Source: Pelomyxa schiedti
Taxonomy: Eukaryota > Protista > Evosea
Reading direction: 5' to 3'
Length of the DNA stretch: 64,000 nt
NCBI GenBank assembly: GCA_020536535.1
Contig: JAHLWZ010000851.1
Location: 11,134-75,133, forward strand
Position numbers and translations under genes: made by a program. Under the pieces are notes generated by a model, which searched no databases, was not told the origin of the DNA, and saw only the letters and a program-made list of their open reading frames with translations. The first letter of the stretch is position 1, and each line of letters begins with the position of its first letter. Of the stretch, positions 256 to 49,115 are shown one piece after another.

Positions 256-2708
256 TTAACTATTTTTTTTTGTTTGACAACTTACAGTGGCTAGTGGTTG
301 GAGGATCTTTGTTCCATTTTTGTTTTGATTTGGAGAAGAAGCTGGTCCCTTATAATTTGTTGGTTGGTTTCTATGTTGGTTGGGCTGTTTGAGCTGTGTT
401 TGTTTGTGTTGAAAAAGTATTTCAGTTGTGAGTGGGAAAAAATAATACTGGCGAGGGAGGGATAAGATGTTAGTTACCTCTGCAGAGTCTGGATATAGTC
501 CGCCATTGTGGAAGCTACTGATTCCTGCAGGCATTCCATCAAGTCACTGCTGGTGGTTCTTAAGGGTGGTCAGTCCAAGTGTAAGACTTAGAGGTAGTTT
601 GGGTTGGGGGCTATTTCACCTGATTGCCGTGGACATAGACAGATACAGCTCCTCAAGTTTGGCCCTGGCGTCGGCGTATTGCGCGATGGACTGTTGATGC
701 GACTCCGCTTGGTCCCATGATTCTTTTGTGCCGGCTTGCGCTGCTGCAATCCGCGCCGTGAGTTCCTCATGCTGGGTATGAGTCTCGGTGTACCGTGGGA
801 TGTTCGCGTGAACGGCGTTTCGCGTGGCGTTCAGTTGAGTGCGCAAATTTGCGTTGTCTTCCGTTTTCTGCTTGTTGTCGCCTTCCACCTTGAATCCATC
901 GTGAGGTAAGGAGAAATAAGTCAGCGAAAAGGGATGAATTTTGTGATGAAGTGGAAACCTGTTGGCAATGTCTAGAGAGCTCAGCCATTTCCCCGTCCCA
1001 GCTCATCCTTTGGTTCAGGAGTCTATAAAATTTCAGCCGTAAAAAAAAAAAAAAAAACCACAAAAAGGGAAGAAGCGTGTGCCTCGTAATTTCCTGTGTA
1101 AGGGAATTGACTTTCCGATCCAATTCCGGTTCCTCCTGCTGAAGCTGCTTATATTTGATTTCTTGGTTTCTAAGCACATCTTGGGTGCTAATTAGAATCT
1201 GCTCCAAGTTCACTTGCACTTGATCCTGTGTTGGAACTCAGTTGTGAGTCTTTGGTGCAGGGAACACACATTACTTCTATTTCCTTGCTCCAGCTCTTGC
1301 ATTTCCCTTTGTATTACTCTCAAATCGGCTTGCAATTGGTTCATCACCTCTAAATGATCATTCTCCTTTGTTACTGATTTAGCAACTTGCATAACTGCTG
1401 CAACCGTGGAAGTTTGAGGAACCTCTACAGTTGGCGTTGAAGTGGGGGCATCCTTAGGATTGGACGGAGATGGAGCTACAATGGCTTTTGGCTTATTATG
1501 ACTTGGTTCTGGTGACTTGGCTACATCCAAAGGCATAGAGTTGAATGGTTGTGACTCGGATGCCTGCGGAGCTTTTGTTATAGTTTGGGGTGCAGTGTCG
1601 GGTGCCTGTGGTGCTTTTGGTATGGTTTGGGGCGCAAGGAAGGGCCGAGTAACTTCTGGGAGGATGATAGCCGGACTAGGAGGTGCAAGGCTTCTTGGGG
1701 AAATAGTTTTTGCGGGAGTTGGGATTGGTATAGGGGTGGGGTAATTAATTTGGTTATTGTATACTAAAGTTTGGGCTTGATGTGAATTGCTAGGTGGGGT
1801 TTGAGAAGGTGAAGGAGTATAATAAGTTGGGGGTAGAGTCAAGGGTTTGGTTGTTCTCCAATCAAAGGGTGGCTGAGGGAGTACATTGTAGGGGGGCTTT
1901 ATTACGTCCGGAGGGGTTGGCAGATTGAAAATATCTGTGGCACCTGACTTTTGAGGCTGAGGGGGATACTGGGGTGTTACTGGTTGGACCGTGTAATTCT
2001 GGGGGAATGCAGGGTACTGAACAGGTTTTGGAGTTTGTGTGTAAAGTGTTGTAGAAGGTGGTAGTCTTGTGTAAACTTGGCCTTGTGAATAGGGACCTGA
2101 CACAGTGGGGATAACAGGAGGTGGAGGAAGTGAGTGCATAGGAGCAGAAGGCGGCATTGTGTTTGTTCTTATAGGTTGATATCCCGGTTGAAAATAAGGG
2201 GGGTAGTGCTGGGTGGGTGATGGTGTTGCCTGATTGAGTGCCTGTGGCGGCGGCAGCGGCTGCTGCGGCTGATGATGTGGAAACTGCATGGTCATGGGTG
2301 GCCCGCGATTCGGAGAGTTGATGGTGGTGGTGACCACATTTGGCAGTACAGGCGGCAATGCTCTAAGGTTAGAATACGGCTGTGGAGCCATAATAGTGGC
2401 AGAGTTCCTGCCTGAATTTATTAGACTGGAGTTGCTGAGCCCAAGTGGGTGGGCTGATTTCTTTTTTTTTTTTTGTGGGGGGAGGTGTTAATGACAGCAG
2501 GTCAAGGTAATAAAATCAATGAGAAGGTTGGGGTGTAGGATCAATCAATAGATACCGAGATCTCCAACACGCCGGCAGTGGAACAATGCTGTGGTTGCAT
2601 TGTGGCCAACGCAGACTTCCCGTTATTCCCGTAATTTACTGACCTTGACAGAGGATTTTCGCTTGCGTTTGTGCTTGGTGGCGGAGGAAAGGGCGTTGCA
2701 CGGCTCAT
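256..2708 (-). CDS. Hypothetical Pro/Gln-rich protein with C-terminal coiled coil (spliced; both ends approximate)
   Basis: 393-aa Pro-rich ORF 1210-2391 splices to coiled-coil exons (767-1219, 616-888). A probable first exon MSRATPFPPPP starts at 2708. Confidence 0.5.
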
Positions 2709-2922
2709 TTTCTTTTTTGTTTGGGGAAAAAAAACTCAAGTTGAGACGCTGCTGCGCCGAAAAAAAAAAAAAGTGGTAATTCAGAGGGTATCTGCCACTT
2801 GCGTCACCCCAATCATCAATGTAGCGCCAAGGGCGGAGGGCTCTGACCAGTCCAGGTGTGTCGATCTCCCCTAGGAGTCCGGAAAGGTCCAAGTTGGTGG
2901 CAGCAAACAGATCTGGACGAAA

Positions 2923-5900
2923 ATGGAACCAGTCAACAAGAGGGCTCGCACCCCGCGGTGGTCCTCGTCGTCGTCGGCGAACCCGCCGGCTCCTATTGCA
3001 GTCCCGAATCTTGCGGCCCTTCAGACCGCCGCCGCCCATCGCGCTCCGTCTCAGGACCAGAATCAGCAACACACGCAGGAGGTCACGAACGCAGCCGGCT
3101 GCGCGCAGGAGGGAAGGAGAGATGGTGGGCCCGCCGCCGAGGAAATTGATTCCCCGGCGCCTGAGTTGTCAACGGCGAGTTCGCGCACGACGGAAAGTAG
3201 TAGCAGTAGTAGTAGTACAAGAATAAGTGGGAGTGGGAAGATCTCTGCTGGCCCGGCGAGTGCCGTGACCACCGGGAGCGACATTGACGTGGATCTTTAT
3301 AGTAGACAGCTGTATGCCATTGGCGTGGAGGCACAGAAGAAGATGATGTCATCTCGGGTTGTGCTTGTGGGCTTCACTGCACTTGCTGCCGAAATAGGTT
3401 TTCCGCTCACCCTTTTATTGCCGGCAACAATCTAAACGGACCACCAGCAAAGAATTTGGTTCTTATGGGGGTGCAGGGAGTTACTCTGTACGATTCCGGT
3501 TGTGTGGAATTGGGGGACTTGTGCTCTAATGTATGCGAGCGGCATACGAAAACAGCATTTCATTAAAATCATTACCAGTTTCTGCTCACTGAGTCCGATA
3601 TTGGTCGAAAGCGGGGTCAGGTTTGTGCCCAGCGACTGGCTGATCTTAACAACTATGTCTCTGTTTCCTTCGTTGATAGTTCTTCAGAGACTCTAGAGTC
3701 GCTTCTTTCCAATCATCAGGTTTCCTTTCTCGTTCTTGTCTGTGTTGAGGGAAAATTTCACGGTCGTTATTTGACAGATAGTTGTGGCCACTGGATGTTT
3801 CTTGGCTGTAGCTCTGAAAATTAACAAGGTTTGTCGAGCTCATGGGATCAAATTTGTTTGGGCAGACACTCGTGCTTGCTTTTGTTTTGCATTCAACGAT
3901 TTTGGCCCGGGATTTGCTGTATCAGATAGAACTGGTGAACAACCACATTGTTACAACGTGGCACGGATTACTCAGGACAGTTGTGCAACCGTTTCGGTCA
4001 TTGAGGACCAGGTTGTGGAATTTGAAGAAGGGAGTGGAGCAGTATTTTCTGGAGTAGAAGGAATGGAAGAAATCAATTTTGATCCCATCAGAAATTCAAA
4101 GTCGTATGTCTGTAAAGTCACAGGTCTTTCTATGTTCCAAAGGAAGCCATCCAACATTTTATAGGCCTGCACGAGATACAAATTGGGGACACTAGTTCTT
4201 ACCACCCTTACAGCTCTGGTGGTTATATCTCCGAAGTTAAAAAACCTTCCGTGATGGATTTTGTGTGTCACTCTTCTGCACTTAGTGCCTAATAACTGAC
4301 TTCGTCGAAAAAGGATTCTCTTGAAGAATCCCTAAAATCACCACGTTTGATAGAGGTAGATTCTTCCAGGGCAACCAGAAATGCCCAACTTTTTTCTGCG
4401 TTCCGGGGCTTGTGGGATTGGGCTGACAGCCATGATGGAACACTTCCTGAATACTTTGACAAGGTCCGTTGCGCATGCAACGCTCTCTAACTTCACCATA
4501 TAGAGGCATGCCTCTGAAGTAGCAGAACATGCTAGAAAGTATCAACTTGCAGGAGTGGAAGTAATTCCTGAACTCAAGCTTTTGTTTAATATTAACACTT
4601 GACAGTTCAATGACGATCTCAGCTCCACACTTTCTCACATTTGCCGCGGTGAATTACCCCCACTTGTTACTTTTCTTGGTGGGGTTGTGTGCCAGGAAGT
4701 CATGAAAGCTTGCTCTGGAAAGTACTCACCGATCAATCAAGTAGCGTACCATATGTTATCAATCTTACTCTGATATAGTGGCTGCTTTACGATTGTGATG
4801 ATGTTCTTCCTGGAGGTGGAGATAAACCTTTTGAATTAAGTCCACACTGTCGGTATGAACGTCAGACAATGGTGCTAGGAAAAGAAGTTGTGCACGCAAT
4901 TTTAAATGCCAAGATGTTCCTCGTTGGTGCTGGTGCTATTGGCTGTGAAGTTTTAAAAACGTGGGCAATGATGGGTCTTGGTTGTGGCGATAATGGTATC
5001 TTTTTCTCACCTTACAAGTTATTACTTATCACCAATAGGAATTGTTCACTTAACTGACATGGATTTGATAACTAAATCCAATCTTAGCAGACAATTCTTA
5101 TTTCGGCCTTCAGATATAGATGTATAGTATGAACTAATTTTTTGTATGCTGACTCTCGTAAATCACAGAAGCTTAAATCTGAAGTTGCCGCCTCTGCAGC
5201 AGTGAAGATGAATGCGTCAATGAAGATCAAACCTTACTCCTCCCGAGTTGGTATTGAAACAGAAAGTATGTTATCAAGTTTTATTCTACTGGCAATTCTA
5301 AGGAAATCAAGGTACCTTTGATGAAGATTTCTACTCTAGCCTAATTGGTGTCTGCACGGCATTAGATAATGTTGCAGCACGTCTTTACATGGACTCTCAG
5401 TGTGTGTTATATGGGAAAGCACTCATCGATTCTGGAACTCTTGGAACGAAAGGAAACACCCAAGTTCGTTTTCTTTCCTTTTATTATCTTTTCGATTCAA
5501 AAGTGTCTAGGTTGTGGTGCCTCTCCTCACTGAATCTTATGCATCCTCTCATGATCCCCCTGAGAAAGGAATTCCGCTTTGCACATTGCATCACTTCCCA
5601 AATGTCATCGATCACACAATACAGTGGGCTCGTGATTACTTTGATGGCCTTTTTACTAAGGACCCTCTTGTTGTGCAATCATATCTCACACAGGCCTCTT
5701 ATTTAGATGTCAGATGTCCTAATACCTACATTTTTCACCTTACCTTTTCCCAGAATGTGGGGCACCAATCTCTCGCCTTGAAAAAAGAAACACTGGAAAC
5801 ACTGAAGACATTACTAGTTACACAAAGGACAAAGAACTTTGTACACTGTGTCAAATGGGCGCGGTTGCAGTTCAACCTGATGTTCACTGAAAATATCAAG

Positions 5901-7210
5901 AATCTTTTATACAATTTTCCTCCCGATTCCCTCACGAATACTGGAGGTAATCTGTCAAACATACCAATAATGATGCCTTCCATTAGTTCCATTCTGGCTT
6001 GCTCCGAAGAAATGCCCGGCACCCCTTGAATTTGACGTCAATGATTCCACTCATAGGGACTTCATCTTAGCAGCTGCAAATCTCCGCGCCTTCAATTTTG
6101 GCATTCCCTGTAAGTCCACAGCCCCACTTTCATATGTCTTACTGAATGTGTGTAAGCACAAAGCCTCACAAAAGGGGAGCTTTCCTCCATTGTTACCGAA
6201 GTCATTTTACCTGAGTGGCAGCCTTCAGGAACCATCAAGTTAGACAATACAGAAACTGGAGAAAGCCATACTGGTCAATCAGAGCCAACAAATTCTGTCG
6301 ATCCAGATTTTGATGCTGTTTGCACAACTCTGCAATCAGAAATACCACAACCTTCTGAGTTGAAGAGCCTAGCCGTTTTACCTTGCGAATTTGAGAAAGT
6401 ACTATGATTTCCATTTTCGTGGTATTCTTACCTCCTTAGGATGACGATGCCAATTTTCACATGGCATTTGTAACTGCAGCATCCAACTTAAGAGCGGCTA
6501 ACTACAAGATTCCTCCTGCCGATTTTCAACGGACCAAATTAATTGCAGGAAAGATCATTCCAGCCATGATATCCACAACTGCCGTTGTAAGCGGGTAAAG
6601 CACGCACTTACCTGTCTTCCGATCATGCTAACTCAATTGTTGTACAGATTGCAGTGCATTGAATTGATCAAGGTAATCGCTGGAGTCAAGTCCCTCGCCA
6701 AGTATCGGAATGCTTTTGTAAACCTTGCACTGCCATTCTTTGCTTTCAGTGAACCCCTGGCGGCACCACTAACAGAAGTGCGCAAGGGTTGGTCGTGGTC
6801 TATCTGGGAACATATTGACATTAGTGGACTCTCCAATTGCACCTTACTAGAGTTCCTGAATACAATGAAGGTACCCTTTCCCTTTGTGCTACTAGACACA
6901 TACCTTCCACCCTCTCACTTTGCATTGCAGGATAAATTCCAGTTAGATGTACAAATGGTCTCCCTTGGAAATGCCATGCTGTATTCTATGTTTGCCTCTA
7001 ACCGTGAAAAACTCGGAACCAAGTGCGTGTTCTACGGCCACCTTTGTGGTTGTGTTAATGCTTCCTTTCAGGATGACAGTTTTGTTTGATAAAATACTGG
7101 GACCAGACCCGGCCCGCAAATATGTAATTTTGGGGGTGTCCTGCACCAGGTTGGAGGACGACTTGGACGTTGACATCCCCCCAGTATTCTTCTACACCCA
7201 GGAGTCCTGA
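2923..7210 (+). CDS. UBA1: Ubiquitin-activating enzyme E1 (UBA1/UBA6 family), multi-exon
   Basis: Motifs [48 protein letters not shown], catalytic [20 protein letters not shown] and [11 protein letters not shown], plus a C-terminal UFD. Confidence 0.92.
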
Positions 7211-7318
7211 CCCCCTTTTTTAATCTTTCATTCACTACGACAAAAGAAATTAAAATCAAAAAAGCTCAAAATTTTTAATTTTTCTATTGGGTTTTTTTTT
7301 CCCAGCACCAAAATTCAG

Positions 7319-10300
7319 TTACTTACTCCGAGTCACTTGAACTGCCGCTGCCACTCCCACTCCCACTACCGCTTCCACTGCCACTGCCATTAGAACCACT
7401 GCCTGACCCACTCTTGGAACTTGATTCGGATTCGGAGCCTGAACTGGAATCCACATATTCAGCTGCAGAATCCTTGAGCTTTTCCTTGGGAGAGTTTGTG
7501 AGTTGTTTTGTTTGGGTTGGTTATTTTGTGTTGGGGCAAGGGACACACTTTTTCTTTTTCTGCTTTGGCTTTGGCGAGTCTTTTGGCGGCCTGTAGCAGT
7601 GTTAAATCTAACTGACAATTCCATCAGTACTTTACAACCTCAGGGTCATCACAACAAGTGGGGCACTGCCAATCCCCGGGTGGAATCCCAGCCAGGCCAA
7701 TGCATCTAATAGGTGTTAAAATGAAAACGAGGGAGGAAAAGATTAGTTACTTGATGTGGAACACTCGCGGGCATGTATCACAGCAAAGTAAGTTGCCACC
7801 TTTGCCGCAAATCTGGCACTCGCTATCCGATTTTTTATTCAATTCTTCCTCAATTTCTTTCTGGTGAATGAATGGTGAGTTAGAGTTCACACAGCTATTG
7901 CATACTCGGCAGGGTGGGCATCTCCAAGTAGAAGGAACCGCTTCGATGGGTGGAATTAAGCAAAATACGTGGTAGGTCGCTTCGCATCTGTCACACTTGA
8001 CCATTTTATCTTCATCACTGGATCGTCTGCAAGATTGGCAACGCTAAAACGGGTCAAGGTGAAGAGGATATTCCGTCAAGCATACTGTCATCCAAAGGCA
8101 GTTTGGTTCAAATTCCCTTAATTCTACAATAAGCTGCCCGGCTGTCTTTGCCTTTGCTAAGGCCTCACGCCATTCCTCTCGCACAGATCCTGAGAGCCAA
8201 TGCTTTCCTACAGATGATTTGGATTCACCGACACATGTCTCGAAGGTTTCCAATAGTGATGCGAGTTCCTTTATCGTTTCTGCATTGGTTACATGGTCTC
8301 GCCACTGTTTTCGAGCGCGGGTCAGTTTATCACTCTGTGACGTCTTCATTCAGTTAGGACAAACTGATGGTAATAAGAAATTCACAAACTTCGTCAGCAG
8401 AATCTTGATCTGGAATCATAGATGTAAAGAGTGCATTATCTTGCATGGCGTCACTTATTCGAAGAATTTGCTGTCTGCAAAGTGGAATGCAATTGCAGGG
8501 GAAAAGTTGTATTGGATTCTGTGGTGGGGGTTGTTCTTTGTGAATTGCAGGCATCCCTGTTGGAGTGAAAAAGGGAATTTTTTTGGGTGCAGCATCACCA
8601 GTAATTGTAATTAGATGAAATCTATGAGATGTTATTGCGGGTGAGAATCAACATCGTACAGATCGTCATCTGCCATTGCAGCCTTTAAGTGATTCAACTC
8701 ACGTTTCAACATAGTAGCTAAACCAGCTTCGTCTTTTGAGTTGAGGGATTTCATTAGGTCATCCAACTGTTATTTTGTTACACCTTCTAGCATAATAGAA
8801 CCCACCCCACTAATAGAAAGAAACCATTGTTGGTGATGTGTACATGAACCACTGGTGAATATTTGCCGCCCACTTTTCAACAAAAAGATACTTGGAATCG
8901 AAAATACGATACACGTTCTTCCTATGTTTTGTTAAATGGATTGACTGTACGATATACCATCTGTCATAGCCCACAAAATTCGCTCGTAGCATGCTGCTCA
9001 ACTTCTTCTCCAGTTGGGCTATGTGTACACTCTAACATTGTGACTTTAAGAGAAATACAATACTTAGAAAGAATACTTGCTCATCGGTGTGGGCTTTTTT
9101 TGGAGCGCCAGGAGATTTCTGCAATTGGTGGGATTTGATAGAATGTTAAGGAAAAGTGATTACAGCTTTGGGGTGCCTGTCCTTTCTTGCCTGGTCAACC
9201 ATCTGTGTCACATTTTCGATGGTAGTGCGGGCCGATTGCGAACGAGATGCACTATGGCATAAGAGGGCAACCGCAGGTACTCGCACTGAGGGACCTAAGC
9301 CACATCCATCTATTTCCTCAAGTTGTGCAGCTGCAGGCAATGCGCGACCACATAAAACTTTTGGTCCAAGTTCAGCCGCTGCAAGTTCGACAAACTGTGG
9401 CACTTAATTTGTGGAAATAAAGTGGATTTCTACTTGTCTTATTGATTCCCAGAGAGTGATTTGGTCTGGCTTCTCGGGAATTTCGTTGTACTTGTCACAG
9501 TTTAAACTCTCAGATGATTTTCTCTCCTCCAGTGCTATCTGTGAAAAATGAGAAAATTTTAGAACCTGGCTAGATCATGCCTCAAACAGGGTCCTAAGAA
9601 TTTGGAAGGACGATTCCAATACCTCTGTTTGTTTTTTTTTTTAAAAGAAAACAGGTTGTAAGTTGTAACTCTCCCATTTGGTTGCTACCTTTGGAAGTAG
9701 GAGGGCTCAATAATTTCAGTACGTCTACAAGAGTAAACTCTTGTTGAAGTAAGGAGGGTCTACAGAATATTTTTAAGGTACATCACAGAAGGAAATTCTT
9801 ACCCAAAGTTTGAAAGGAAATTCCAAATGAACAACACATCTCCCACCTCTATATCAATGGTAGCACTAGCTGTGTCATAAGCTACAATTTCAGGGGTACT
9901 TGGCCATGATGATGACTGTACTTCTGTGGACACAACAGCACTATTCTGGACTGGAAAGAAGTCTTTCATCTTAAACACTTTGGGTAATCTTGTTAACTAT
10001 ACCTGAAATTTTACTTTTGCCTGAAGAGTGCTGTTTTTTTTTTTTTTTGTTTGTTTGTTTGTTTGTTCATGTTAATGGTTAACGTGCATTGATAGGGAGA
10101 TACTCTCTTATCTGTATCACTTCCTACATCCTTGCTTTTATGTGAGTGGCTGTGCTTGTTACTAGTTGAGTCGCCATGTGTGTGTTTATGCTTGTGCTTA
10201 TGTTCATCAGCGTGGGTTTTTGAGTCCTCCGATATTTTAGGTTTTTTTGGTGAGTGGGTATCATACTTCAATGGTGAAGTGGAAGTGGTTGTTGAAGTGG

Positions 10301-13118: not shown

Positions 13119-13572
13119 ATGGCTACGTCCGTTGTGGTTGCTGTGCAGCAACAGGCCAACCAGCCTGGAGAATGGTTGATGGTTGAGCTTCAAGGTGCGT
13201 TGGAATTTGTTGGAGGCGGCGTCTCTGGTGCCGATTTGGAAGTGGCCGTGGCAACAATGACTTACTCTGTGGACCAAGTTAATATTTGTTCTTTATACTT
13301 TTAGCTGGGTTCGCGAGCGAAACTTTTTTTTTTTTTTGTTGGTGTTGTTTGGGGGAGGACTCACGTGGTGCAAAAAAATGACTCAGACAAAAGCGAGATT
13401 GATAATTGGGACTAATGTGCTGGAGGGAACAGTGCAACAACTTGCAAAGCCATTTGCCGTGATTCAGGCCTCAAAACAGACCTCGGCCACATGGGAAGTG
13501 CAGGCATTCATTAAAAAGAAAGTGCTGTTCAATACTCGCCCAAAGCACATTTTGGCACAAACCGGATCATAG
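13119..13572 (+). CDS. CTF8: Chromosome transmission fidelity protein 8
   Basis: EWLMVELQG ... ARLIIGTNVLEGTVQQLAKPFAVI ... IKKKVLFNTRPKHI matches the Ctf8 consensus; one intron. Confidence 0.85.
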
Positions 13573-14208
13573 CCAGTTCTCACTTCCTCAAAGAAGGAAC
13601 CGAAACTTGGATATTTTCAGTATCATGCACTTGTACCCTTATCTCTGAACGCTAACAATTTGCCAGAGCATGGAGAAATTCTCTAATGTAAAGCTGTGTC
13701 ACCCAATGCCATTGCTAAGCTTGTTTGACAAAAAATGCTCGACATACCACAAAGAGGTAGGCCAAACCTCAATTCCATTCAAAAAGGGAGAAAACATTTT
13801 CTACCTTCCAACCACGTATTCCGAACACTTTTGATTTCGGTTCGTCTCCCTCCAAGAACTACTCGGCATAAGGAAATGTAATTTTTTTTTGTTAGCGAAA
13901 GTGAACTTTGGGACTTTCTATCTTGGAAGTGCAGATGATCCCAGAACGGGTCACACCATTTTGCATTTGTTGAAAAGTCGCATTTTTCATCGCCGAGCAC
14001 TTCAACATCAAAGTTGACCGTCAGAGAAAAAACAAATAAAAGCGACCAACCAAGGATCAATGCTCAAAAAACATTTCGCGCTGGAGGGCCGTACCAGGGA
14101 AAATCACTCTAAATTCAATCGTTTCCCTGGAAAACGAAACCACTATCAAAAATTAAACCACAACAACAACAATTGTCCCCCTTGTCTACCAAACAATCAA
14201 TACCGAAA

Positions 14209-15222
14209 ATGCTCTCTTTCGAAACCCACACACTACTTTCCCACCCAGCTTCCTCGAAAGACATACGTGCTCCGATAAGCAAGAACGCGCAAGCCTTTAA
14301 ACCAACAAACGCCTGCTCTTGCTCTTCCCCCTCCTCATCCTCCACCAATTATGGGAATGGCGATACCAGCTTCGCACAAGGGCTCTCTGAGCTCCTTACG
14401 CGTATCGTTGAGGCTTCTCGTAATCAGAGCAATTCCGTAAGTGGAATTCATTACCCTGGGCCTCCCAAGGGCACAATGACAGTTTTTGACGGGGCCAGGT
14501 GCAAGCCGCCATCAATTTCTCTTCAGGACTTTACTGCCAGAATTGAGCGGTACTCTGGGTGCACAAGGGCTACCGTAATTGCTGCCTTGGTATATTTGGA
14601 TAGGCTTCTGGTCAAACACCCATTCATTACCTTGACTGAAACTAATGTGCACAGGCTGCTCTGGACTTGGTATGCTCCATTCCCCGAAATTTTTTTTTTA
14701 CATTTACTTGGCTTATATTATGCTACTACTCCAATAACAAGCAAACAATTCGCCAACCAAACTCACTAAATGTACAGCCTTGTTGTGGCTATCAAGAATT
14801 TTGAGGACAACTTCTACAGCAACTTGCACTATAGTAAAGTTGGTGGAGTTAGTCTACCAGAAATGAACAACTTGGAGATAACTCTTCTCCTTGCACTTGG
14901 CTTTGACCTCTTCATTGAATCCAAACAATTTGACCAATATGATGCGGCCTTGGCTGCTTCCTGTGGTTTGTACCCTCAAAATAAAAAAAAAAACACAAAC
15001 TACTGTGTACAATAAAACAAACAAACAAACAAACAATAAAAAAAAGTCTCTGACCTGAACCCTTCAGACTTCGCAAAGAAAGCCAAGGAAGTTACCACCA
15101 CACAAGCAACTCCACATCTGGTATCTACTCATACACCCGAGTCAGGTCCCAGATATCAAGTTCGATACCAGTATACAGCTTCACCAGTCTCCAGTGGAAT
15201 TGTGGGACCCACAAGATTGTAG
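14209..15222 (+). CDS. Cyclin of the P/U (Pho80/PREG-like) family
   Basis: PPSISLQDFTARIERYSGC...ALVYLDRL...NVHRLL...KNFEDNFYSNLHYSKVGGVSLPEMNNLE; three exons. Confidence 0.88.
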
Positions 15223-15644
15223 AATCAACTCAGTTGGAGCCCAACACCATGGAATCCTCACACCAGAATCACTACACCTGTGTTTCAATTCAACACCCAC
15301 ACAACACTTGTAGGTTCCCCGCTGAAGAGTGGTGGAACGAATCATAACTTATTTGTTGGCCCATCTCATAGTCTTCTCTAATCAAAAAAAAAACAAAAAC
15401 AAAAAAAAAGAATCAGAGTGGTAGTAACGAGTTTTATCAACAGGTGTTTGTTCTGCGATTGCAAACTTTTGTCATCACATGGCACAGAGCCTTGTGCTGT
15501 GGGGAAGTTGATCTGGAATAACAGACCCGAAGTTAGACCCGTTGGCAGGTACAATTATGGTTGAGCTTCGTCGAATTTCTGGGAATCTCAAAAACAGCGA
15601 GATCGCCGAAAAAAAAAAAAAAAAAACCCAACGGTGGCACGCAA

Positions 15645-18600
15645 ATGGGCTACGTACTTCGCGACGTCTTCGTTTCTTTGTTGCTGTTCGCGCTTATGGG
15701 TTCCGCAGGTGTCTCCACTTGTTTTTTTCTTTCCTTCTCTTGTTTTTTTTTTTTTTCCCCTTTCTGCGGAATAAAACGTCATACGAACAAAAACCAAAAC
15801 TAAACTAAACTAAACAAAACCAAACAAAATAGCAAAGATAAAGTCACCAGTGTTGAAGGTCCAAGAGTTTGGGCAATTTACTGTTGATGGAATGAGCGAG
15901 CCCATTCGCCGTATCAGCGGTGTATTTATGAATGACCTCACCTCGCCCAACAACGACACTGACTTGGTGCTGCTGCACTACGTGGGCCTCGACTTGGGGC
16001 TTTTCGCCTGGTGGACAGGCAGTCTGCCTCCAGAGAACTTGTACGTCGTGAGGCTGTCGCTATCGGACCCGGCGGCTGGTTTGACAGTACTGCGGACTAT
16101 GCAGAGACCAAGTACTGATGGAGGTAATGCTAGGTTTGTGAGGATATATGGGTGGCAACAATACGACCCTGGAAACGTCGTTCTCGTTGGTGCTAATCCT
16201 ACCCTGAGGATTGTGTTCAATACATCGGACCCGACCTATACTACCCCGGCAGGTAATGCCAAATATGGCACTATTAGCAGCCTGCAGCATTCAGGGGACA
16301 GTTCTTTTTTGGGAGCAACTGTCCCCCCAAAAACAAACCCCAGTGATCCCTGGTTTTCTGTGATGGTTGCACTCCAATACATGTCTGACGATCCCAATAC
16401 CTATCCAAACAACCCCGCCCAATCTTTCCCCATGATGCTCCCTCCTGCCTTCAGTGCCTCCACTCCAAACCCCAGCACTGGGTCTAGCCCCGTTGACAAT
16501 CTGTACACAGTTTGCAATGTTTCTTCACCAGAATGCGTCTTGTTCTATCAGAGTAACGCCACTGTTTCACGGGAGACTTGGATTGTCAGTGAACAGTCAT
16601 CACCCTGGGTTGTTGTTGCCGCATGGAAAGATGCACTTTTTGTATTGCACACACCTTCCTGTGATGTAAATATGTCACTACCAACCTGTGCAGTCGCTGT
16701 CAACATTGGATCTGGGTTTGATTACTTGTGTGGTGCTCTGGATTCTAAAGCTGGTTTTCTGTTTGTAGGAACGGCTGATGGCTATGGAGTTAAGATCAAC
16801 CTCACAGATTCAAAGATGAATTCAAAAACGATTTCCTTTGAGTCTGGTGCTATTATTGGTGTGGTTGCCGATCCCAAAACACGCACAACATTCTGGCTGG
16901 TGAAGGACCAAGGTATAAGACGTGTACAATACGACAACTTTGGATACGATAGCATTATGCAAATTCCAGTGGATGGGATTTCCTCAAATGGCACATGCCC
17001 CTGGAATGAGGATTCTGGGTTTCCAGACTACCAGCCATATCCCATTCCAGCCTATGGGTATATTAACACAGAATTCAACATTGGTTATTTCGTTGGACAG
17101 AAAAATATTGGCTGTCAGTTCTCAACTTATGTTATTTCTTTTGAATTATCTCATTGCAGCCAGTACACTAGTTGCGGGGAATGCATCAGTGAGACTTCTG
17201 GTGTTGGTGATAAGTACTATTGTGCCTGGGACCGTTACAAACAGCAATGCTATCCAAAATACGTCAATACAACCTCCCCTGTGGATCAAAAAGAATCCGA
17301 TTGTATAATTGAGACTTCTGACGTTTCACCAACAGAAGTTATTGACAAGGCACCCCAACCACTACTAATAACTGCCTACTGTAACTTCTCGGATGACTGT
17401 AACATCTCAACGGCTGAGTCGGTTGAAAAGCTGTGCGTCTTCACCTTTGACGAAGGTAGTAAGTTAAATACTACCGCCAAAGGGACTGGAAATCTTGTAA
17501 CGTGTCCAACTCCTTATCTGGAAATTGGTGCTTCAAAGGCTTCTGTAACAGCAACCTTAGAGTTGTTGTTCAATAGAATCCCAGTGTTCCAGAGTATAAT
17601 ATTGATCACATTCAAAAGCTGTGAAAATAAGACGACATGCGCTTCTTGTAAGGGTGGATGCAGGTGGTGCACACTTGGAAGTTTATGTACCGTGAACTGT
17701 ACCGATGAAAAGGCCCCCCCGCCTGAATGCGTTACGCTGTACGATGCAAACCCTCGTACAAGTACTGTTGGTCTTCCAGAGACCATAACAATCTCTAGCA
17801 GTATTCTCCCCAACTTCACTGATACTGTCACGTTGGACTGTCTGTGGGAGAGTGGCGGAAATTTAACCTATACAGTAGCCACCCCCCAACAAAAAAGTTT
17901 TCAATGCGACTCGCCGTCAGCAGCCTCCAACTACACTCTATCTGTGGTGTATAGTAACACTGTAGAAACTCGTCAACCTCTTTACACACAGGACAGTGCT
18001 ACAAGTGGAATGACACACAAAAACTTCAGCTTTGTTGTTCAAAGCTGTGAAGTTCACACCAACTGCAGTAGCTGTAGACCGTTGTCTCAACAAAACCATT
18101 CTGACAGTGAATGTATTTGGTGTGTTGATAATGTGGGTGCAAGATGCCTTAGCAAATCCAAGTGTAGTAATGGTAACACCTTTACTTACACTGGAGATCT
18201 GTGCCCCTCCATTGCAAGTTCCACTCCACAATACGTAGACAAAAATACTGACGTCTCGTCTGTGGACGTGACACTGACGGATGATGGCGGTGTTATTACA
18301 ACACTCCCTACTTCTCTTCTTTACTCCTGCTCGTGGCTGGATGATCTAGGAAACAACTACCAAGCCAGTGCTACTGGTGTCAGTGGACGAGTTATCACAT
18401 GTCCAATCCCTGTATCACTCTTCGCAAAAACATATGACTTCACCGCCAGCCTTCAGCTATATTTAGAAGGCAGTCTTTTTGTTGAAGATACCACTTCTCT
18501 AGAACTATACTCCTGTACTTCGACTGGAAATGCTCCAATAAGTAACTGTACCCAATGTATGCTTTTGAATAAGGAGTACTGTGGATGGTGCTTAACAACT

Positions 18601-20883
18601 AGGACTTGCGCTTCTGCTGGAGGGTGTACTACACCAACAAGTTCCGAGTCTAAAGACGGCACCCTCTCACAACATGCATGTCCCTCAATTGATGTAACTG
18701 ATCGCCCTACATCCACTCTGTCTATGGTACCAGGACCTATTACTGTTACAGGGAACGTGTTTAGCACAGCCGTACAAAGCAATTTGACATGCGTTCTGAA
18801 TGCATCTCAAGTCCAACAAACAATGAACTCATCAGTGACTGTTCTGAGCAGTACTACTGCTAGATGCAACTTTGATAGCAGATTTGCACCGCTTGATTCA
18901 TATAATTACGCCTCTTTGGGGCTTACTTTAACCATCTTCCAATTTTTTGACAACCAGTCGATACTCTATGCGTCATATGCACCAACATTCATTCTTGTTG
19001 ATTGCAGTGATTCTGGATCTCCCAATCCAGCCTCCTGCACGGACTGCGGCAGAGCCAGGCCAACAGCTTGTAAATGGAATCTCAAATCCATGGAGTGCAC
19101 AATGAACACAGACAACTTCACACAAGCCAATTGTCCTATAATCTCGGGTGTATCTCCAAGCTCTATATGTGCGGGAGAAACAGGGTCAACAATAATAACA
19201 ATTGCAAGTGACCCCGAGACACCAGAGTTCGGGTACAACGTCTCCTTTGGAAATCTCTCGACTGTCCCTTGCAACCCCATTTCTGAAACAGAATGTGAGG
19301 CAGCAATCCCACTTTGTTCAAGTTTGACAATCGTACCACTTGTAATACTGCGAAATGATATTAAATACACCTACAACTACTACACGTTCACTTATCAGTA
19401 CTGTGCACCTAGTGAAGAATCCAGTTCATCGGAAGAGAGCGTCACAAAATGGATTATAATTGGCGCAGTTTGTGGATTTTTCGTTCTTCTCCTACTTGCT
19501 CTGGGAGGCCTCGCAGGATTTGCCTTCTATCGCAGGCGTAAAGCAGGAGGGGATGTTTTTGAGTTTGACTTGATAAAGAACAAGCCCGACTTCACAAAGT
19601 TGCAGTACGATGGTGAATTTTCTCGGGCCACTCCCACTGCTTCCTCGTCAAAGAGGCATACTATATGTGGACATCCAGAGCAACTTGCTAAAGCCCTGTT
19701 AAATCTCTCTGTGGCTAGGTCTGTGTGTGAAGTTACACAAGCCACGGAGGCTGACAAAGTTGCCAGCTCCTTGGTTTATGTCCATGCCTCAGCAGGGTCA
19801 TCTCTAAAATTAATTAGCACCTTCGTGGAAGATGAGGTTACCAGAGTGCAAAACGAGTCCCTGCTCTTCCGTGCGAACAGCTTTGCTTCGAAAATGTTCC
19901 GGTCGTATAGCAAACTTCTTGGGCTAGAATATCTGTGGTACGTGGTTGTTCTATCCTGTGCCAACCTAATTACACTCTGAATCAAAGGTTCACACTTGGA
20001 GGTTTCTTGGCTGAGATGGCTTGGCTTGCCCAGCAAGACGAACTAAAGGCACAAGCACTTGCAAAATTGCAACCCAAAGCAGCAGATGCAGATGCGGAAC
20101 CGACTGATACATCAATGGCGGCGTCAGCTCAATTTAATGATTTCGAGGTCGACCCCACTAAAATGAAAGCTGGATTTGATGAAGAAGCACAATCCTATAT
20201 GCTAGCCGAGCGTTCCAGAAAACTCCTTGTTGCTGTGTTACGCTCAAAAGATAGAATGCCACCTCAAATAAGAGCATTAGTGAAATGTATAAGAGAGCAG
20301 GTCACAAAGCGATTCCCCGACGTAGAGAATATTGCTCACATAGCTATCGGCGGAGTAATATTCCTCCGTTTTGTATGCCGTTTGTTTTTCTTGCTGCTTC
20401 TCATTTCATGCAGATCTGTCCGGCACTCACTCTTCCCCATGTTTATGGACTGCTTAAAGCACCTCCAGATACCCGGCTCCAAAGGCAAGTTATCCTGCTG
20501 AGTAAAGTGATACAGAATTTGGCAAACGGTGTTCTTTTTGGTGGTAAGGAACCCTACATGCGCAACATGAATGAGTTCATTTCCCGAAACCTTGATGGTT
20601 TGTACCCTCCTCACCCATCCCGAACTCCTGCTGACTTTCCGGCTCTTCCACAGAAATAAACGATTGGATGGACAGCCTTGCCGATGTGAGCGACGCGGAA
20701 GAAGTCCGGGTTGACCTACCTCCCGAAGTTATGGAGCATGCCTTGTCCTTCATGCAGTCACACATTGAAACCAACAGGGGGAAGCTTCTTACTACATTAC
20801 AGAAGAACGGGGTACCTCAGGAGGACATTGACCTACTCATGGGCTCTGTCACCACAACAACAACCACCAGCACAGACAATTGA
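15645..20883 (+). CDS. Type I membrane receptor with PSI/IPT-like ectodomain and cytoplasmic RasGAP domain (plexin-like architecture)
   Basis: Signal-peptide exon MGYVLRDVFVSLLLFALMGSA; repeated CxxC...CxWC PSI-like units; TM WIIIGAVCGFFVLLLLALGGLAGFAFY-RRRK; RasGAP motifs LFRANSFASK, GGVIFLRF and SKVIQNLAN...KEPYM. Confidence 0.85.
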
Positions 20884-43805: not shown

Positions 43806-46800
43806 TTAATTTCGTTTGCTGAGGGTGATGTCGGAGCGTAGGGTGGTACAGGGAACAATTTCCTTGCTAATGGGAGTTCCTATGAGGGGTGATGTGTTGT
43901 GTGTTTCAAGCCATGTTTGGATAGAGCGGTGGTCATACAAAAACCTAGGGAAGTTGTATCAGGATTTGGGTGGAAAGCGGGAGATTGATTACCAGTCACT
44001 GGCAAAAACGGGGTTCTCCATTTCTCTCCGGGACAATGGACAGATGTATTCAGGATAGTCCGGGCGTATGAGTGGAAGACCTTACGTTTGGTTGACGTGG
44101 TGAAAAAACTGTGTTTGGGGGCAAACCTGACAGTGTTTCTAAAACGGCCTTGGCCAAATCCTTGACTTTGAATAGCAAAGAGTTCGCGGCGGGCAACGGT
44201 ACTCCAAGAGTGAGGAGGTCTTTCTCTGTAAGGTGCAGTAGGGCCCAGCCAGGAAGATCAACTTGTTCGCAGATGGAATAAGGTAATTTCTGAGATTCCA
44301 GCCATTTATGAACCACAGTAGGTGACCATGTGCAAACGAGACGGGGATTAAGGTCATTTGACAATGTTTCAGTCATTGCAACAGCAAGAGGAGGAGAAAC
44401 TCGGATATAGCCTGTGTGGCGCAACAGCCAACTTGTGTGCATTAGAAGCTTGCGGTCCAGCAACTTGGTAACGCCAAGACCATCAAGTATTTGGTCGGTA
44501 ATTTTATTAAATTGAAGGCCATCGATTCCCTGTGCTTCAAAAGACTGCACATAAGCACTGAGGCCAATGTCACGTAAAATCATGGATATTTGTTGAGTGC
44601 TAAGTGCTGGTAGCTCCCCAACTTCTTCAAAGTTGCGTACTATCTTGGTTTTGTGTACTTGTGTAGCACGCATCAGATCTGCATTGGTCTTTAATGCTAT
44701 ATCTGCCTCTATCCTCATGGCCTGGCCAGCTTCGGTAATTTGAGTGCATAGATTCTCTGCAACAGACAAAGATTTCTGACAATCAGAAAGTTTCTCCTGG
44801 TCTGAAATTAATGCTTCCTGCAGCATACTTAATATTTCCTCTTTCTCGGCTAGCTGTTTCCGAAGATCTATTATCTGACCTCTTACTCGGTTAATACTTT
44901 CTCGTCTTTCTTCAATGTCACCAATCTGCTCATCAACCTCAGTAGCTCTCTTTTCTAGAGTAGACTGTGCGCGGTTTGAGGCTGCAGTGAGATGGTCGAG
45001 AGTTAGTAGGGCTGCCGTAGCTTTGGCTGTAGGACCAGTGCTGGTTGCATTAAGGAAAGAGTTCACAACTGGAGGCATTGTGAGCGTTGGTTGTAATATT
45101 GTTGTATCTGTGTTCAGTGTTTCAGTGAAGAAGTTCAGTGTAGTGGAGACGGCCTCAACAATTTCTTCCATTTTGGGTAGTACAGGGAGATTGGTTGCTT
45201 GTACTGCCACCCATGGAATGTGTTGTGGTGGAGGGGAGGGAGCACTCCGGAAGAGGCTATGTATTTCTGTGTTGGTTGAGTTGCTTAAACAATCAAGTGG
45301 TGTTTTTCCGCCGATATTCTGGTTGAAATGTAAGAGCATTGAAAGCATCCTTTGAATGATACTTTGATTCTGTAGTCACTGACACGCAGTAAAATCTGGA
45401 CCATTTTCGGTAGTTCCAACTTGCATGCAATATGTAGAGGAGTCTGATAATGGTAAAAACTATGTGTCACTTATTTGATACTTACGTCTCCCTACATGGA
45501 ATTAGAGGATAAAAAAAAGAATTATTCACTTACAAGCTGTGCATGTCCAGGGAAAAAAAGAGGTACAACAATTAATAAAGAAAAAATCAAATAGGTCACT
45601 TACTCCCTAAAGAGTGGTGTGAAATTGCTTGGCAACTAATGATGAACTTACGTTCTTCAAGCCAGAAAGGGAAAGGAAGAGTCCAAAAATTAAATTTGTT
45701 TTTTTAAAAAAAACAGTAAGTCCTCATTGAAGTGAGAATTACATACAATCTGGTGGAAAGTTAGAAGTTTTTATTATGTGTGGGAGTGTACCCCCTAAAA
45801 ATCAATAAAGAAGGTATTATCAGATCGTACAGAAACGAGAAAAATGTCAATAAATAAAAATAATGAAGATGCTGACAGACCCTCTGAAAGATTGTGAATG
45901 AAACTTAAAGAAAACGGGACATACAATCTGAACACAATCATTGATCAAGTTGACCAATGTCAAATGAGAACAAAAAAATAGATACAAGAAGAATTACCCG
46001 CTAGGAGAGGAAAAAAGGCATATGTTAGCATTAAAGAAATAAGAAGATGGCCTTACCATCTAAGTTGCCCAATAGAACCGAAGCAAGGGGGAAAAAAAAA
46101 AAAAACCTATCAGTAAGAAAACACCTTAGATCATACATACAATCTTTTAAGGAAGCCACCAGAATGAAGAAACGAATTAGTAGAAATAATAGAAATTGAT
46201 ATCATACTTCCTGAGGAAAAGTTAATTTAAAAAAAAAAGGAATATTTAACTTACTCCCTAATTGGTGTAGTAGAACCAATTCCTTTAATCAGAAAACATA
46301 CTATAAATCATGACATTACATACATACTTGAAAAGTGAGAAAAGAAGAAAAGGAGTTGAAAGCACACAGTCTGTTTGTTACAAATGGCAGCAAGTAGGCA
46401 AGAAGTGAGAAATTTAGGTCAAAAATCGAAGAAGGTACTTACTCCCTTAAAAAAAACCTGTTAAAAGGAGATAGATAGTGATGGCACATACAGGCTATGT
46501 GTTGGGCAGAGCAAAGAGAATAAGTTGTTTTGATAAGTTACAACAGAAAAAATTTAGTTGAGCATACTTTCTGCAGGAAAGAGAGTCAGAATACTGAAAA
46601 GACTAAAGAAGAGAATGAAATTGGCATACTATCTGAAGCAAACAGTTAAAAAACTAAAGTAAATGGGTATGGAAAGTACCTGCAGATTTGGATTTGCCCT
46701 AAACTTGAGGAGTAGTTCCACCATTTCTGGGAGATTTCGTGCTACAGCCACATGCAAATGGGTCTACTAAAATTAAAAAACCAAAAGAGTGGTTGTTGCA

Positions 46801-47043
46801 CAGTACCGATCCGCCCTGTAATCGCCAAAGGGAGGAGAAAGAAAAAGGTGTTATTGTGGCAAAAATAAAATCAACCAAAAAAAAAAAAAAAGAAAAGCTA
46901 AAGCAGAAACGCACTCTCATGTAGTCATCAGGGTCGACGTTACGCAGCAACCACCCGGTGACCTCCGAAAGATCGTTGTTCGCCACCGCATTGCACAACA
47001 AAAATCTGTTCTTTTGAAACACCGACTCTGAGATCCCGCTCAT
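43806..47043 (-). CDS. Ankyrin-repeat / coiled-coil / 2xSAM / U-box protein (putative E3 ubiquitin ligase) containing a microexon array
   Basis: Exons in order: 47043-46915 (43 aa); 46815-46807 (GGS); 46763-46680 (THLHVAVARNLPEMVELLLKFRANPNLQ); the microexon array; 45443-45363 (TPLHIACKLELPKMVQILLRVSDYRIK); 45318-~44127 (NIGGKTPL, coiled coil, SAM-like LRDIGLSAYVQSFEAQGIDG and WSPTVVHKWL...LLHLTEKDLLTLGV); then U-box PEYICPLSRREMENPVFASDWFLYDHRSIQTWLETHNTSPLIG. Confidence 0.87.
45486..46632 (-). other. Tandem array of 18 predicted 3-nt (single-codon) microexons plus one 6-nt microexon
   Basis: AG|NNN|GT units in transcript order: ATA 46630-32, AAA 46568-70, CCT 46492-94, GGA 46443-45, ACT 46368-70, TAT 46324-26, GGA 46255-57, GAA 46208-10, ATT 46141-43, ATG 46057-59, CGG 45998-46000, ATT 45925-27, AGG 45881-83, GGG 45792-94, ATT 45747-49, AAC 45652-54, GGA 45604-06, CTT 45534-36, then GGAGAC 45486-91. 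Introns are 41-92 nt and all phase 0. Confidence 0.85.
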
Positions 47044-47213: not shown

Positions 47214-49115
47214 TTAGTCCTTGGAGGCTGAGGCGTGTTCAAATGTAGTCGAGCTGTTGGATTCTGCAATAATTCTGGAGAGAGGTGATGTGGGTTTTGC
47301 CATCGTCCCCCCTGTTCCTGAGGTTGTTATGTCACTGATGAGGGCTGGGTGTTGTTGGTGTAGTGGTAGTTGGTGGTGTTCTTGCTTAGTAGAGCCAGCA
47401 GCGGCGGTGGGGCTAGACGGCAGGGGCAACTCCAGGGGCTCGCACCTGAGCAGGCTGCCGGCCGCGGCCCCCGTGGGCGCGTTGGGCGGCAGCGTCGGGC
47501 TCGCGGGCAGGTTGATGAGCGGCGGCAGGGTCACCCCGCTGTTGAAGATGAGGGACTGCGTGGTGGTGCGGGGCACCAGCGCAATCACCCCTGGGCTGTG
47601 GGCCCGCTGCGGCGGCGGGGGCGGCGGCGCCGCCGGGGTCGAAGCGGGGGGGGCCTGCTTGGTGCCGCAGCCGCCGCCCCCGCCGCCGCTGCTTTCCTCT
47701 TTGAGGGGACTGGAGTCGGGCAAGGACTTGGCGGTGGGCACGTGGATGCCGCCGGACGAAGGAGGGGGAGGCTCCATGGTCAGGCTTCCTCCCCTAATGC
47801 TCATGTTCATGGTCATGGTCATGGGGGGGAGGGCGGCGCTGTCCGGGAGCGGCAGGATTGGGGGGAATGGAGGGGAGGCTGTTGAGTTCTGCAACGGCAT
47901 GAGTATCTGGGGCAAAACCGGGGAGTTGGATTGTGGGTGTATGAGCTTGGATATGGAGTTCGAAGAGACCTGCGGCGGGTTCGGCAACGGCATCGTCGGC
48001 GCCGGCGCCGGCGCTTCACTTGCAGGAGGAGCTGTGACGGCAGTAGTTTCGGGCGGGGATGCTTGCTGGCGTTTCTTGCCCCTGGGCTTCGCATCCGCCT
48101 TTTTTCTCTTCGCAGTATTTGGTTGCTGAGGGGCTGCTGCGGAACTAGCTGTCGTGTGTGATGCGGCTTGGTCGTCAACGGCCTGTGTGACATCACCCTG
48201 TGCTGCATGCTCTTCTTTGGATTCACTGCTGGTGGGCTTTCTTTTACGTGATGTAGTACTTGCAGATTTGTGAGCCCTTTCTTTCTTTTCTGGTTTTTCA
48301 GAGGGGGGAGGCTCCGCAGGTGGGTCTGGAATTTTGTCTGCAATCTCGGAAAGGAAATCAAATAAAACGTTCGTTTTCAAGCACTCTTTCCTAAAGGCAT
48401 CCACAAACAAGCATTAATGATGTGTACAACATCAAATTAGCACATACAAGTGGGATGGTGCAATTGTATAGCTCTGATGACGTTGGGCTACAGCACACGC
48501 CTGCAGTACCAAATCACGTAAAAACAGTTCTACACATTTGGCTGTTGGATTTCTAGTTAGTTTGATGATAATATAAGTTGATATTTTAATCAGAAAAAGA
48601 TAATCTGAAAAATGAAAAAGCACTTACACACGAGAATCGGAGTTGCTGTGGCAAGTTTCCCAACATCTTCATCAGATTGCATAATTCTCTTAATTCTCGT
48701 CTGCCCAAGAAAGATCAGAAAGAGAACGAAAATGAACATAAAAGTTCAATCCACTCGAGATATCTCGCTATTATTATCGCATATCACCACGTAAAACAAC
48801 ATAAACAGAGCCAAAAATACACACCGACGGAAACGCCGTCACTCGCGACTTGCGGTGGTGGACCTCGTGCTCCTGGCTCGGCGTTTGTCCCATAATTGCC
48901 GGTGCCCCAGCCCCAGTAGGAGGCGGTGGCGGCTGCGTCGTTGTAGTAGTGGTGCTAGTCGTCGTGGTGGTGCTGCTCGCGACGGCAGCCGCCGTCGCCG
49001 TAGCCTCGCCCGCCGCGTCGGCTTTCGCCCCTCGCGTCCTGCGTCCCCTCGTAGCCGTAGCACCCGAGGCCGCAGCGTCGCTTTTTGCTCCACGTCCACC
49101 TCGTCCTCTTCTCAT
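47214..49115 (-). CDS. DRAP1: NC2 alpha / Dr1-associated corepressor (histone fold) with long Pro-rich tail
   Basis: FP..RIKRIMQSDEDVGKLATATPILV.KCVELFLRDLV...PSHLKECL...FDFLSEI. Confidence 0.85.

Follow-up and report, generated by a model that had tools for sequence, protein, structure and literature searches.

Can sites of the form AG-NNN-GT, repeated 18 times in an interval of 1.2 kb, be exons of a single codon each, and what would such exons add to a protein? The question is raised by Pelo_12621, a gene of Pelomyxa schiedti, which is an anaerobic, free-living amoeba of the Archamoebae (PMC8887013). The gene lies in a stretch of 64,000 nucleotides (nt) of contig JAHLWZ010000851.1 (positions 11,134 to 75,133) of assembly GCA_020536535.1, called here the window; comparison with the contig gave identity over 21.6 kb. 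It is located on the minus strand and encodes three ankyrin repeats, a coiled coil, two SAM domains and a U-box; the 18 sites stand between its third exon, of 28 amino acids (aa), and a 6-nt exon encoding Gly-Asp (GD). The explanation that we propose, and consider reasonably likely, is that the 18 single-codon exons are spliced stepwise and mostly or wholly included, so that the substrate-binding domain of a U-box ligase acquires a long finger, and that the length and sequence of this finger vary by lineage.

An array of three-nucleotide units in Pelo_12621

Fifteen of the 18 units of the array match the strict pattern AG-NNN-GT[AG][ACT]G, which was found at 18 other sites on the remaining ~63 kb of the minus strand and at 20 on the opposite strand. 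When a similar pattern was counted in all loci fetched, the background was 0.36 per strand-kb, as against ~11 per kb in the arrays. The three units off the strict pattern have weaker donors (CGG/gtaatt, AGG/gtctgt and GGG/gtacac). Each unit is 3 nt long, and there is no stop codon among them. The 20 spacers of the array are 41-92 nt long, with a GC content of 0.20-0.38, a T-rich segment ahead of the AG and branch-like motifs; the annotated introns of the gene family measure 44-76 nt and have weaker and more varied donors.

The introns of the array are bimodal in length and alternate between 41-47 and 56-92 nt (lag-1 autocorrelation -0.58, permutation p = 0.004). The three units with weak donors fall where this alternation predicts, so that it supports their assignment. 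Together, the sequence data confirmed the array as a genuine run of predicted single-codon exons in the unannotated 5' part of Pelo_12621.

Tandem Repeats Finder gave no repeat in the window array, and the all-against-all alignment of its 21 introns revealed a similarity no better than that of shuffles; these two results ruled out a recent tandem repeat, unlike the case of the arrays at the paralogous locus L002 (see below). As the intron interiors have diverged and the AG, the 3 nt and the GT are intact in 18 units, it is the splice signals, with their spacing of 3 nt, that have been conserved. Besides the 18 exons of 3 nt, the micro-exons of the gene include one each of 6 and 9 nt; all are multiples of three in length, and together they account for ~69 of roughly 1900 coding bases.

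The coordinates of all exons are listed in Table 1. The model deposited at the NCBI for Pelo_12621 (P0001, 486 aa) begins at an internal methionine at 45404, within exon 5. The array and the three ankyrin exons thus fall, unannotated, in what the record treats as intergenic sequence. The U-box (PF04564) at the C-terminus of P0001 scored 22.6 bits against a cut-off of 21.4, with relatives reaching E 2.5e-21, and the SAM domain (PF00536/PF07647) scored 45 bits against a cut-off of 23. The genome as a whole has 7.43 introns per gene, nearly all of the GT-AG type, and a Smart-seq2 transcriptome of the organism exists (PMC8887013).

Table 1. Predicted exons of Pelo_12621 in the window, and arrays at the paralogous locus L002 (positions in that locus).
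Feature	Positions	Strand	Remarks
Exon 1, 43 aa	46915-47043	-	ATG at 47043-47041; first ankyrin-like repeat, ends DDYMR; donor gtgcgt after AGA; not in NCBI model
9-nt exon GGCGGATCG (GGS)	46807-46815	-	hairpin of repeat 1-2; L005 homologue has a 9-nt exon at the equivalent place
Exon 3, 28 aa, THLH..ANPNLQ	46680-46763	-	ankyrin repeat 2; Pfam Ank E 9.2e-06
Single-codon exon 1, ATA (I)	46630-46632	-	donor gtatgc
Single-codon exon 2, AAA (K)	46568-46570	-	donor gtatgc
Single-codon exon 3, CCT (P)	46492-46494	-	donor gtatgt
Single-codon exon 4, GGA (G)	46443-46445	-	donor gtaagt
Single-codon exon 5, ACT (T)	46368-46370	-	donor gtgtgc (weaker); matches short/long intron alternation
Single-codon exon 6, TAT (Y)	46324-46326	-	donor gtatgt
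Single-codon exon 7, GGA (G)	46255-46257	-	donor gtaagt
Single-codon exon 8, GAA (E)	46208-46210	-	donor gtatga
Single-codon exon 9, ATT (I)	46141-46143	-	donor gtatgt
Single-codon exon 10, ATG (M)	46057-46059	-	donor gtaagg
Single-codon exon 11, CGG (R)	45998-46000	-	donor gtaatt (weaker)
Single-codon exon 12, ATT (I)	45925-45927	-	donor gtatgt
Single-codon exon 13, AGG (R)	45881-45883	-	donor gtctgt; weakest candidate, placed by pyrimidine tract and 41-nt/86-nt alternation only
Single-codon exon 14, GGG (G)	45792-45794	-	donor gtacac (weaker)
Single-codon exon 15, ATT (I)	45747-45749	-	donor gtatgt
Single-codon exon 16, AAC (N)	45652-45654	-	donor gtaagt
Single-codon exon 17, GGA (G)	45604-45606	-	donor gtaagt
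Single-codon exon 18, CTT (L)	45534-45536	-	donor gtaagt
6-nt exon GGAGAC (GD)	45486-45491	-	G is the conserved Gly, Ank model position 2; counterpart in paralog L002 GGTGAT 9989-9994
Exon 5, 27 aa, TPLH..SDYRIK	45363-45443	-	ankyrin repeat 3; Pfam Ank residues 1-19 on model 4-22
Exon 6	44127-45318	-	NIGGK hairpin, coiled coil, two SAM domains
Exon 7	43993-44080	-	U-box start
Exon 8	43806-43944	-	remainder of U-box and stop codon
L002 arrays	8274-9918 (A); ~16726-17577; 19058-19865	gene strand	AG-NNN-GT units

Upstream from the gene, the last exon of the neighbour (47214-48410, minus strand) stops 170 bp short of the start codon of the ankyrin gene; this exon has a weak DUF755 match only, and the annotated product of the neighbour is of 544 aa. 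Elsewhere in the window (15850-19980, plus strand), an open frame of 1376 aa combines PSI (plexin repeat) domains with the beginning of a RasGAP domain, which is, judging by these predicted domains, a plexin-like architecture in an amoebozoan.

Position in the ankyrin repeat and recurrence of the arrays

The exons, scanned singly and not joined, were placed on the Pfam Ank model (PF00023, 33 positions). Residues 3-28 of exon 3 aligned to model positions 6-31 (26.1 bits) and residues 1-19 of exon 5 to positions 4-22 (21.2 bits), the cut-off being 21.1. The two exons are thus separated by five model positions (32, 33, 1, 2 and 3), of which 2 and 3 are taken by GD; less these two residues, the gap leaves three residues missing from a canonical repeat. 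The site of the array is the inter-repeat hairpin loop between ankyrin repeats 2 and 3. Ankyrin domains bind their partners through the face that carries these loops.

The same count had been reached in a reading of the DNA made from the sequence alone (the sequence-only reading), which took the upstream exon to be 28 aa long and to end in ANPNLQ, and the downstream join to be GD-TPLH. The exon translations bear out both statements, and the Pfam coordinates the three missing residues. The neighbouring hairpins, which it had called canonical, are indeed of five residues each (MR-GGS before THLH and NIGGK before TPL). It had named as refuting an Ank hidden Markov model in which the junction fell outside the beta-hairpin; the Ank model puts the junction in the hairpin loop, and the reading was not refuted on this point.

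When 1.84 billion representative proteins were searched without a profile, a family emerged that combines a coiled coil with two SAM domains and a U-box and has members in Pelomyxa, Mastigamoeba, Mastigella and environmental eukaryotes. Their N-terminal domains are of the ankyrin, WD40, LRR, SH3 or PBD type. Because other members carry WD40, LRR or SH3 where Pelo_12621 carries ankyrin repeats, the ankyrin domain is likely to be the substrate-binding module of the ligase. No arrays were found at loci L003, L004, L006, L009, L010 and L011, which contain members with WD40, SH3 or no recognised N-terminal domain.

Three further arrays, all on the gene strand, occur at L002, the locus of the paralog Pelo_6819, beside paralogs of the ankyrin type. 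Array A has the plan of the window array, in that an ankyrin exon of 28 aa with a final Q precedes it and a GD exon (GGTGAT, 9989-9994) and a TALH exon follow it. Tandem duplication at L002 is recent: the repeated units, of ~100 nt, have conserved flanks and differ in the codon (GAT, CAT, TAT, TCT, ATT, ATC, AAT and GGA). Near the exon, the columns of greatest variability include codon positions 1 and 2. The GGA units have a flank type of their own (..aaactcag before and gtgtgt after), distinct from that of the ..gtgtttag units. Array B resembles a partly deleted copy.

The annotation cuts the gene of array A into an ankyrin "gene" of 91 aa and Pelo_6819, whose model opens with a 6-nt first exon located in the last array intron. 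Two paralogs at this locus are split around an array in this manner, into a small ankyrin part and a SAM-U-box part (7826-8297/10001-11828 and 18679-19114/19334-21346). The L002 arrays are surrounded by tandem ankyrin-kinase genes (413-7568 and 13286-16213), which are without single-codon arrays.

Outside Pelomyxa, an array was found on L005, a 232-kb eukaryotic contig of the metagenome assembly ERZ21831265 with a GC content of 37%. The gene on this contig encodes P0152, 32% identical to P0001, and follows the same plan: exon 1 and an exon of 9 nt come before the 28-aa ankyrin exon with its final Q, after which stand 17 three-nt exons (4687-5697), the TPLH exon and the remainder. The introns of this array are also bimodal and alternating (35-41 and 63-136 nt; autocorrelation -0.37, p = 0.045). 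An open reading frame called at 6001-7350 of L005 runs through a 36-nt in-frame intron of the U-box and includes 12 spurious residues.

Two Trinity transcripts of Mastigella eilhardi, P0010 and P0156, share the frame of the 28-aa exon and differ exactly at the array site: ahead of G-A-TPL, one has an insert of 4 residues and the other an insert of 24, made of few residue types (P0156:69-102). The last ~430 residues of the two are identical, and 22 differences occur in the first ~160, in the ankyrin domain and linker; since so many positions differ outside the insert, P0010 and P0156 are probably two gene copies or alleles rather than splice isoforms. Rapid change in the recognition domain, gene conversion in the remainder, or a chimeric assembly could each account for this pattern. 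A search with the Mastigella N-terminus yielded no further isoforms. The transcript assemblies show that a long insert occurs in an open frame of mature RNA, and that loop length shifts quickly.

An AlphaFold2 model of the Mastigella N-terminus (P0156:1-175), built from a six-row alignment, had a mean predicted local distance difference test score (pLDDT) of 49. In this low-confidence model the insert, with a pLDDT below 50, lies between two helix pairs.

In the Mastigamoeba balamuthi model m51a1_g7775 (P0020), the ankyrin exons are directly abutted at residues ~85-125 (DPNFP-TPLH and NINAR-TALH) and the hairpin residues are absent; the gene spans 4.2 kb for a coding sequence of 1.8 kb. Here the predictor has probably skipped micro-exons.

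Both the sequence and the length of the loop are hypervariable from one paralog or species to the next. In a separate observation, glycine was found every 2-7 residues, mostly encoded by GGA units, in the window array (45534-46632), at L002 (8470-9920), on L005 (4687-5697) and in the Mastigella insert (P0156:69-102).

RNA of the homologue and the possible uses of the array

RNA of the P0152 gene is represented by the Logan contig L007 (1685 nt, run ERR13493907), which was compared with the genomic copies L005 and L008. Two GT..AG intervals of the array, between TAT and AAC (37 nt) and between GAT and the TPLH exon (41 nt), have been excised exactly, as have three later introns, including the 36-nt intron of the U-box. 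At the 5' end of the contig TGG is joined to AGA. The introns between AGA and TAT (92 nt) and between AAC and GAT (35 nt) are retained and contain stop codons. Since introns flanking 3-nt exons were excised exactly, the 3-nt exons of the homologue are real substrates of the spliceosome. Alternate introns of the array are gone from this RNA, and the last five codons are all kept, with none skipped.

These observations are consistent with the following course of splicing. Each tiny intron would be recognised individually, by intron definition. A 3-nt exon could not hold the 3' splice-site factors and U1 simultaneously, so that neighbouring introns would have to be removed in succession: in a first wave every second intron would leave, fusing the codons pairwise or onto a flanking exon, and in a second wave the others would follow. 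Intron definition would by default include every exon, and most or all codons would be kept. In Pelomyxa the outcome would be a finger of ~20 residues with a glycine every few residues, in place of the canonical five-residue turn, and its role would presumably be in substrate recognition. The array would evolve by tandem duplication and loss of intron-plus-codon units and by codon substitution, without ever shifting the frame; such frame-neutral gain and loss, with codon change, would produce the divergence of the finger among paralogs and species.

Several facts weigh against this explanation. The young array A of L002 is without short/long alternation, and the two-wave order may not be general. 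L007 covers the last five codons only and is incompletely spliced, and its TGG-AGA junction rests on four bases. That all 18 codons are included in Pelomyxa is an extrapolation from a homologue that is just 32% identical; searches of RNA-derived proteins, both for the Pelomyxa gene and with the upstream part of the homologue, gave genomic models only. Two strains of the homologue differ at 14 sites, all in intron interiors, a distribution that is not significant with ~1.3 expected in the splice-site and codon cores, and the sites are too few to test codon selection. The structure model of the Mastigella protein is too poor to show how a long insert is seated.

The sequence-only reading had seen in the array a library of cassettes, in which codon exons would be used in varying subsets, ideally of three, so that one gene would yield many loop isoforms, in the manner of designed ankyrin repeat proteins (DARPins) or of the third complementarity-determining region of an antibody. 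Its figure of 816 ways to pick 3 of 18 is correct, C(18,3) being 816. Any subset of the codons would stay in frame and be free of stops, and three codons would bring the repeat to canonical length; the units of the paralog arrays keep their flanks and differ in the codon, and Mastigella has both a near-canonical form (4 residues) and a long one (24). L007, moreover, breaks off where the RNA may have had several different upstream contexts.

Retention of five adjacent codons in the homologue RNA, however, would be very unlikely if the choice were sparse and random, and short introns with intron definition favour inclusion of all exons. No mechanism counting to three is visible, and we know of none that does so. 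Pairing of a docking site with selectors was not found in the paralog arrays: in a search at L002 for a Dscam-like docking site, 16 of 16 matches to the complement of the unit element were on the opposite strand and 0 on the transcript strand. As for the Mastigella transcripts, they are probably separate copies, given their 22 other differences in the first ~160 residues, and their inserts are of 4 and 24 residues, not 3. We therefore regard subset use as unlikely. The claim that the loop varies in sequence and length holds among paralogs and species, but the choice of three codons out of 18 in each transcript, or a library within one cell, is not supported.

If codon combinations did vary, each amoeba would have a population of U-box ligases differing in their ankyrin fingers, a spliced intracellular recognition repertoire assembled residue by residue and directed, for instance, at endosymbionts, prey or viruses. 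We consider such a repertoire doubtful.

The array might instead lie outside the mature protein, its units being decoy or slow splice sites in a single 1.2-kb intron that regulates expression through retention and decay, with ANPNLQ joined to GD, or else a neutral relic. The sole RNA seen is indeed incompletely spliced, with stops in the retained introns, the gene predictors of Pelomyxa and Mastigamoeba pass over the array regions, and array B of L002 looks partly deleted. This account is nevertheless improbable, and we give it little credence: the homologue RNA contains productive exon-exon joins of 3-nt exons, exactly 3 nt have been maintained in ~60 units of four arrays in two organisms, an open-frame Mastigella transcript carries a 24-residue insert at the array site, and the 6-nt GD exon, which supplies the conserved glycine, is common to the paralogs.

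Chance clustering of AG-NNN-GT, or an artefact of whole-genome amplification, which could be invoked as the assembly was made from amplified single-cell DNA (PMC8887013), is a negligible prospect in view of the ~30-fold, strand-specific enrichment, the pyrimidine tracts and the independent recurrence in RNA, on other contigs and in a long-read metagenome assembly of unrelated origin.

Relation to known micro-exon systems

To judge by the literature searched, no exon-intron structure as dense as these runs of 17-20 consecutive 3-nt exons with minimal introns would have been described before. In the searchable literature we found no account of 3-nt exons in tandem arrays, nor anything on microexons in Archamoebae. 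The arrays pose the question of how both sides of a 3-nt exon are recognised, to which the removal of alternate introns first in L007 hints at an answer. They would also offer amoebal ubiquitin ligases a route by which the length and sequence of a binding loop could evolve, and possibly vary, residue by residue with no risk of a frameshift. Standard gene finders and spliced aligners miss such exons: the Pelomyxa models are split or truncated at the arrays, and one Mastigamoeba model joins the ankyrin exons directly.

The micro-exon genes (MEGs) of Schistosoma have exons of 3-81 bp and have been described as a source of protein variation (PMC10526429). They resemble the present arrays in their runs of very short symmetric exons, multiples of three in length, any subset of which stays in frame. 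The exons of the Pelomyxa array, in contrast, are all of exactly 3 nt, its introns are minimal (41-92 nt, whereas MEG introns reach kilobases), and it makes up only ~3% of the coding sequence, whereas micro-exons form most of the secreted MEG protein. It is placed in one loop of a predicted intracellular multidomain ligase with ankyrin, SAM and U-box domains, and its host is an amoebozoan.

Single 3-nt exons that add one residue are spliced in animals, as in Drosophila homothorax micro-Ex8, MAP4K5 and RPS24 (PMC7392893, PMC8632122, PMC11162997). Those are single or at most few, whereas here 17-20 are consecutive and separated by minimal introns.

In gene clusters of the Dscam1 type, tandem cassette exons of more than 100 nt are spliced in a mutually exclusive manner. 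As in these clusters, exon-plus-intron units have been tandemly duplicated, with similar flanks and a differing coding part aimed at a binding surface. In the homologue RNA, neighbouring exons of the array are joined to each other, so that they are not mutually exclusive; the exons are of 3 nt, and no docking/selector complement was found in L002.

At the ratchet points of recursive splicing, AG is followed directly by GT and nothing is left behind. The arrays share with this process an interval between two exons that would be removed stepwise through many juxtaposed internal 3' and 5' splice sites. Here, each step would leave one codon, and the interval is just 1.2 kb; a spacing scan of the array region found no AG and GT in direct contact (zero-length sites, k=0).

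DARPins form a synthetic library in which fixed positions are varied in every repeat and the length is constant. The likeness lies in the concentration of variation at the beta-turn or loop of the ankyrin repeat, on the binding face; in the arrays a single loop would be lengthened about fourfold, and the variation shown is between genes and species only. Set beside these systems, we rate the arrays as a new and extreme variant of micro-exon organisation.

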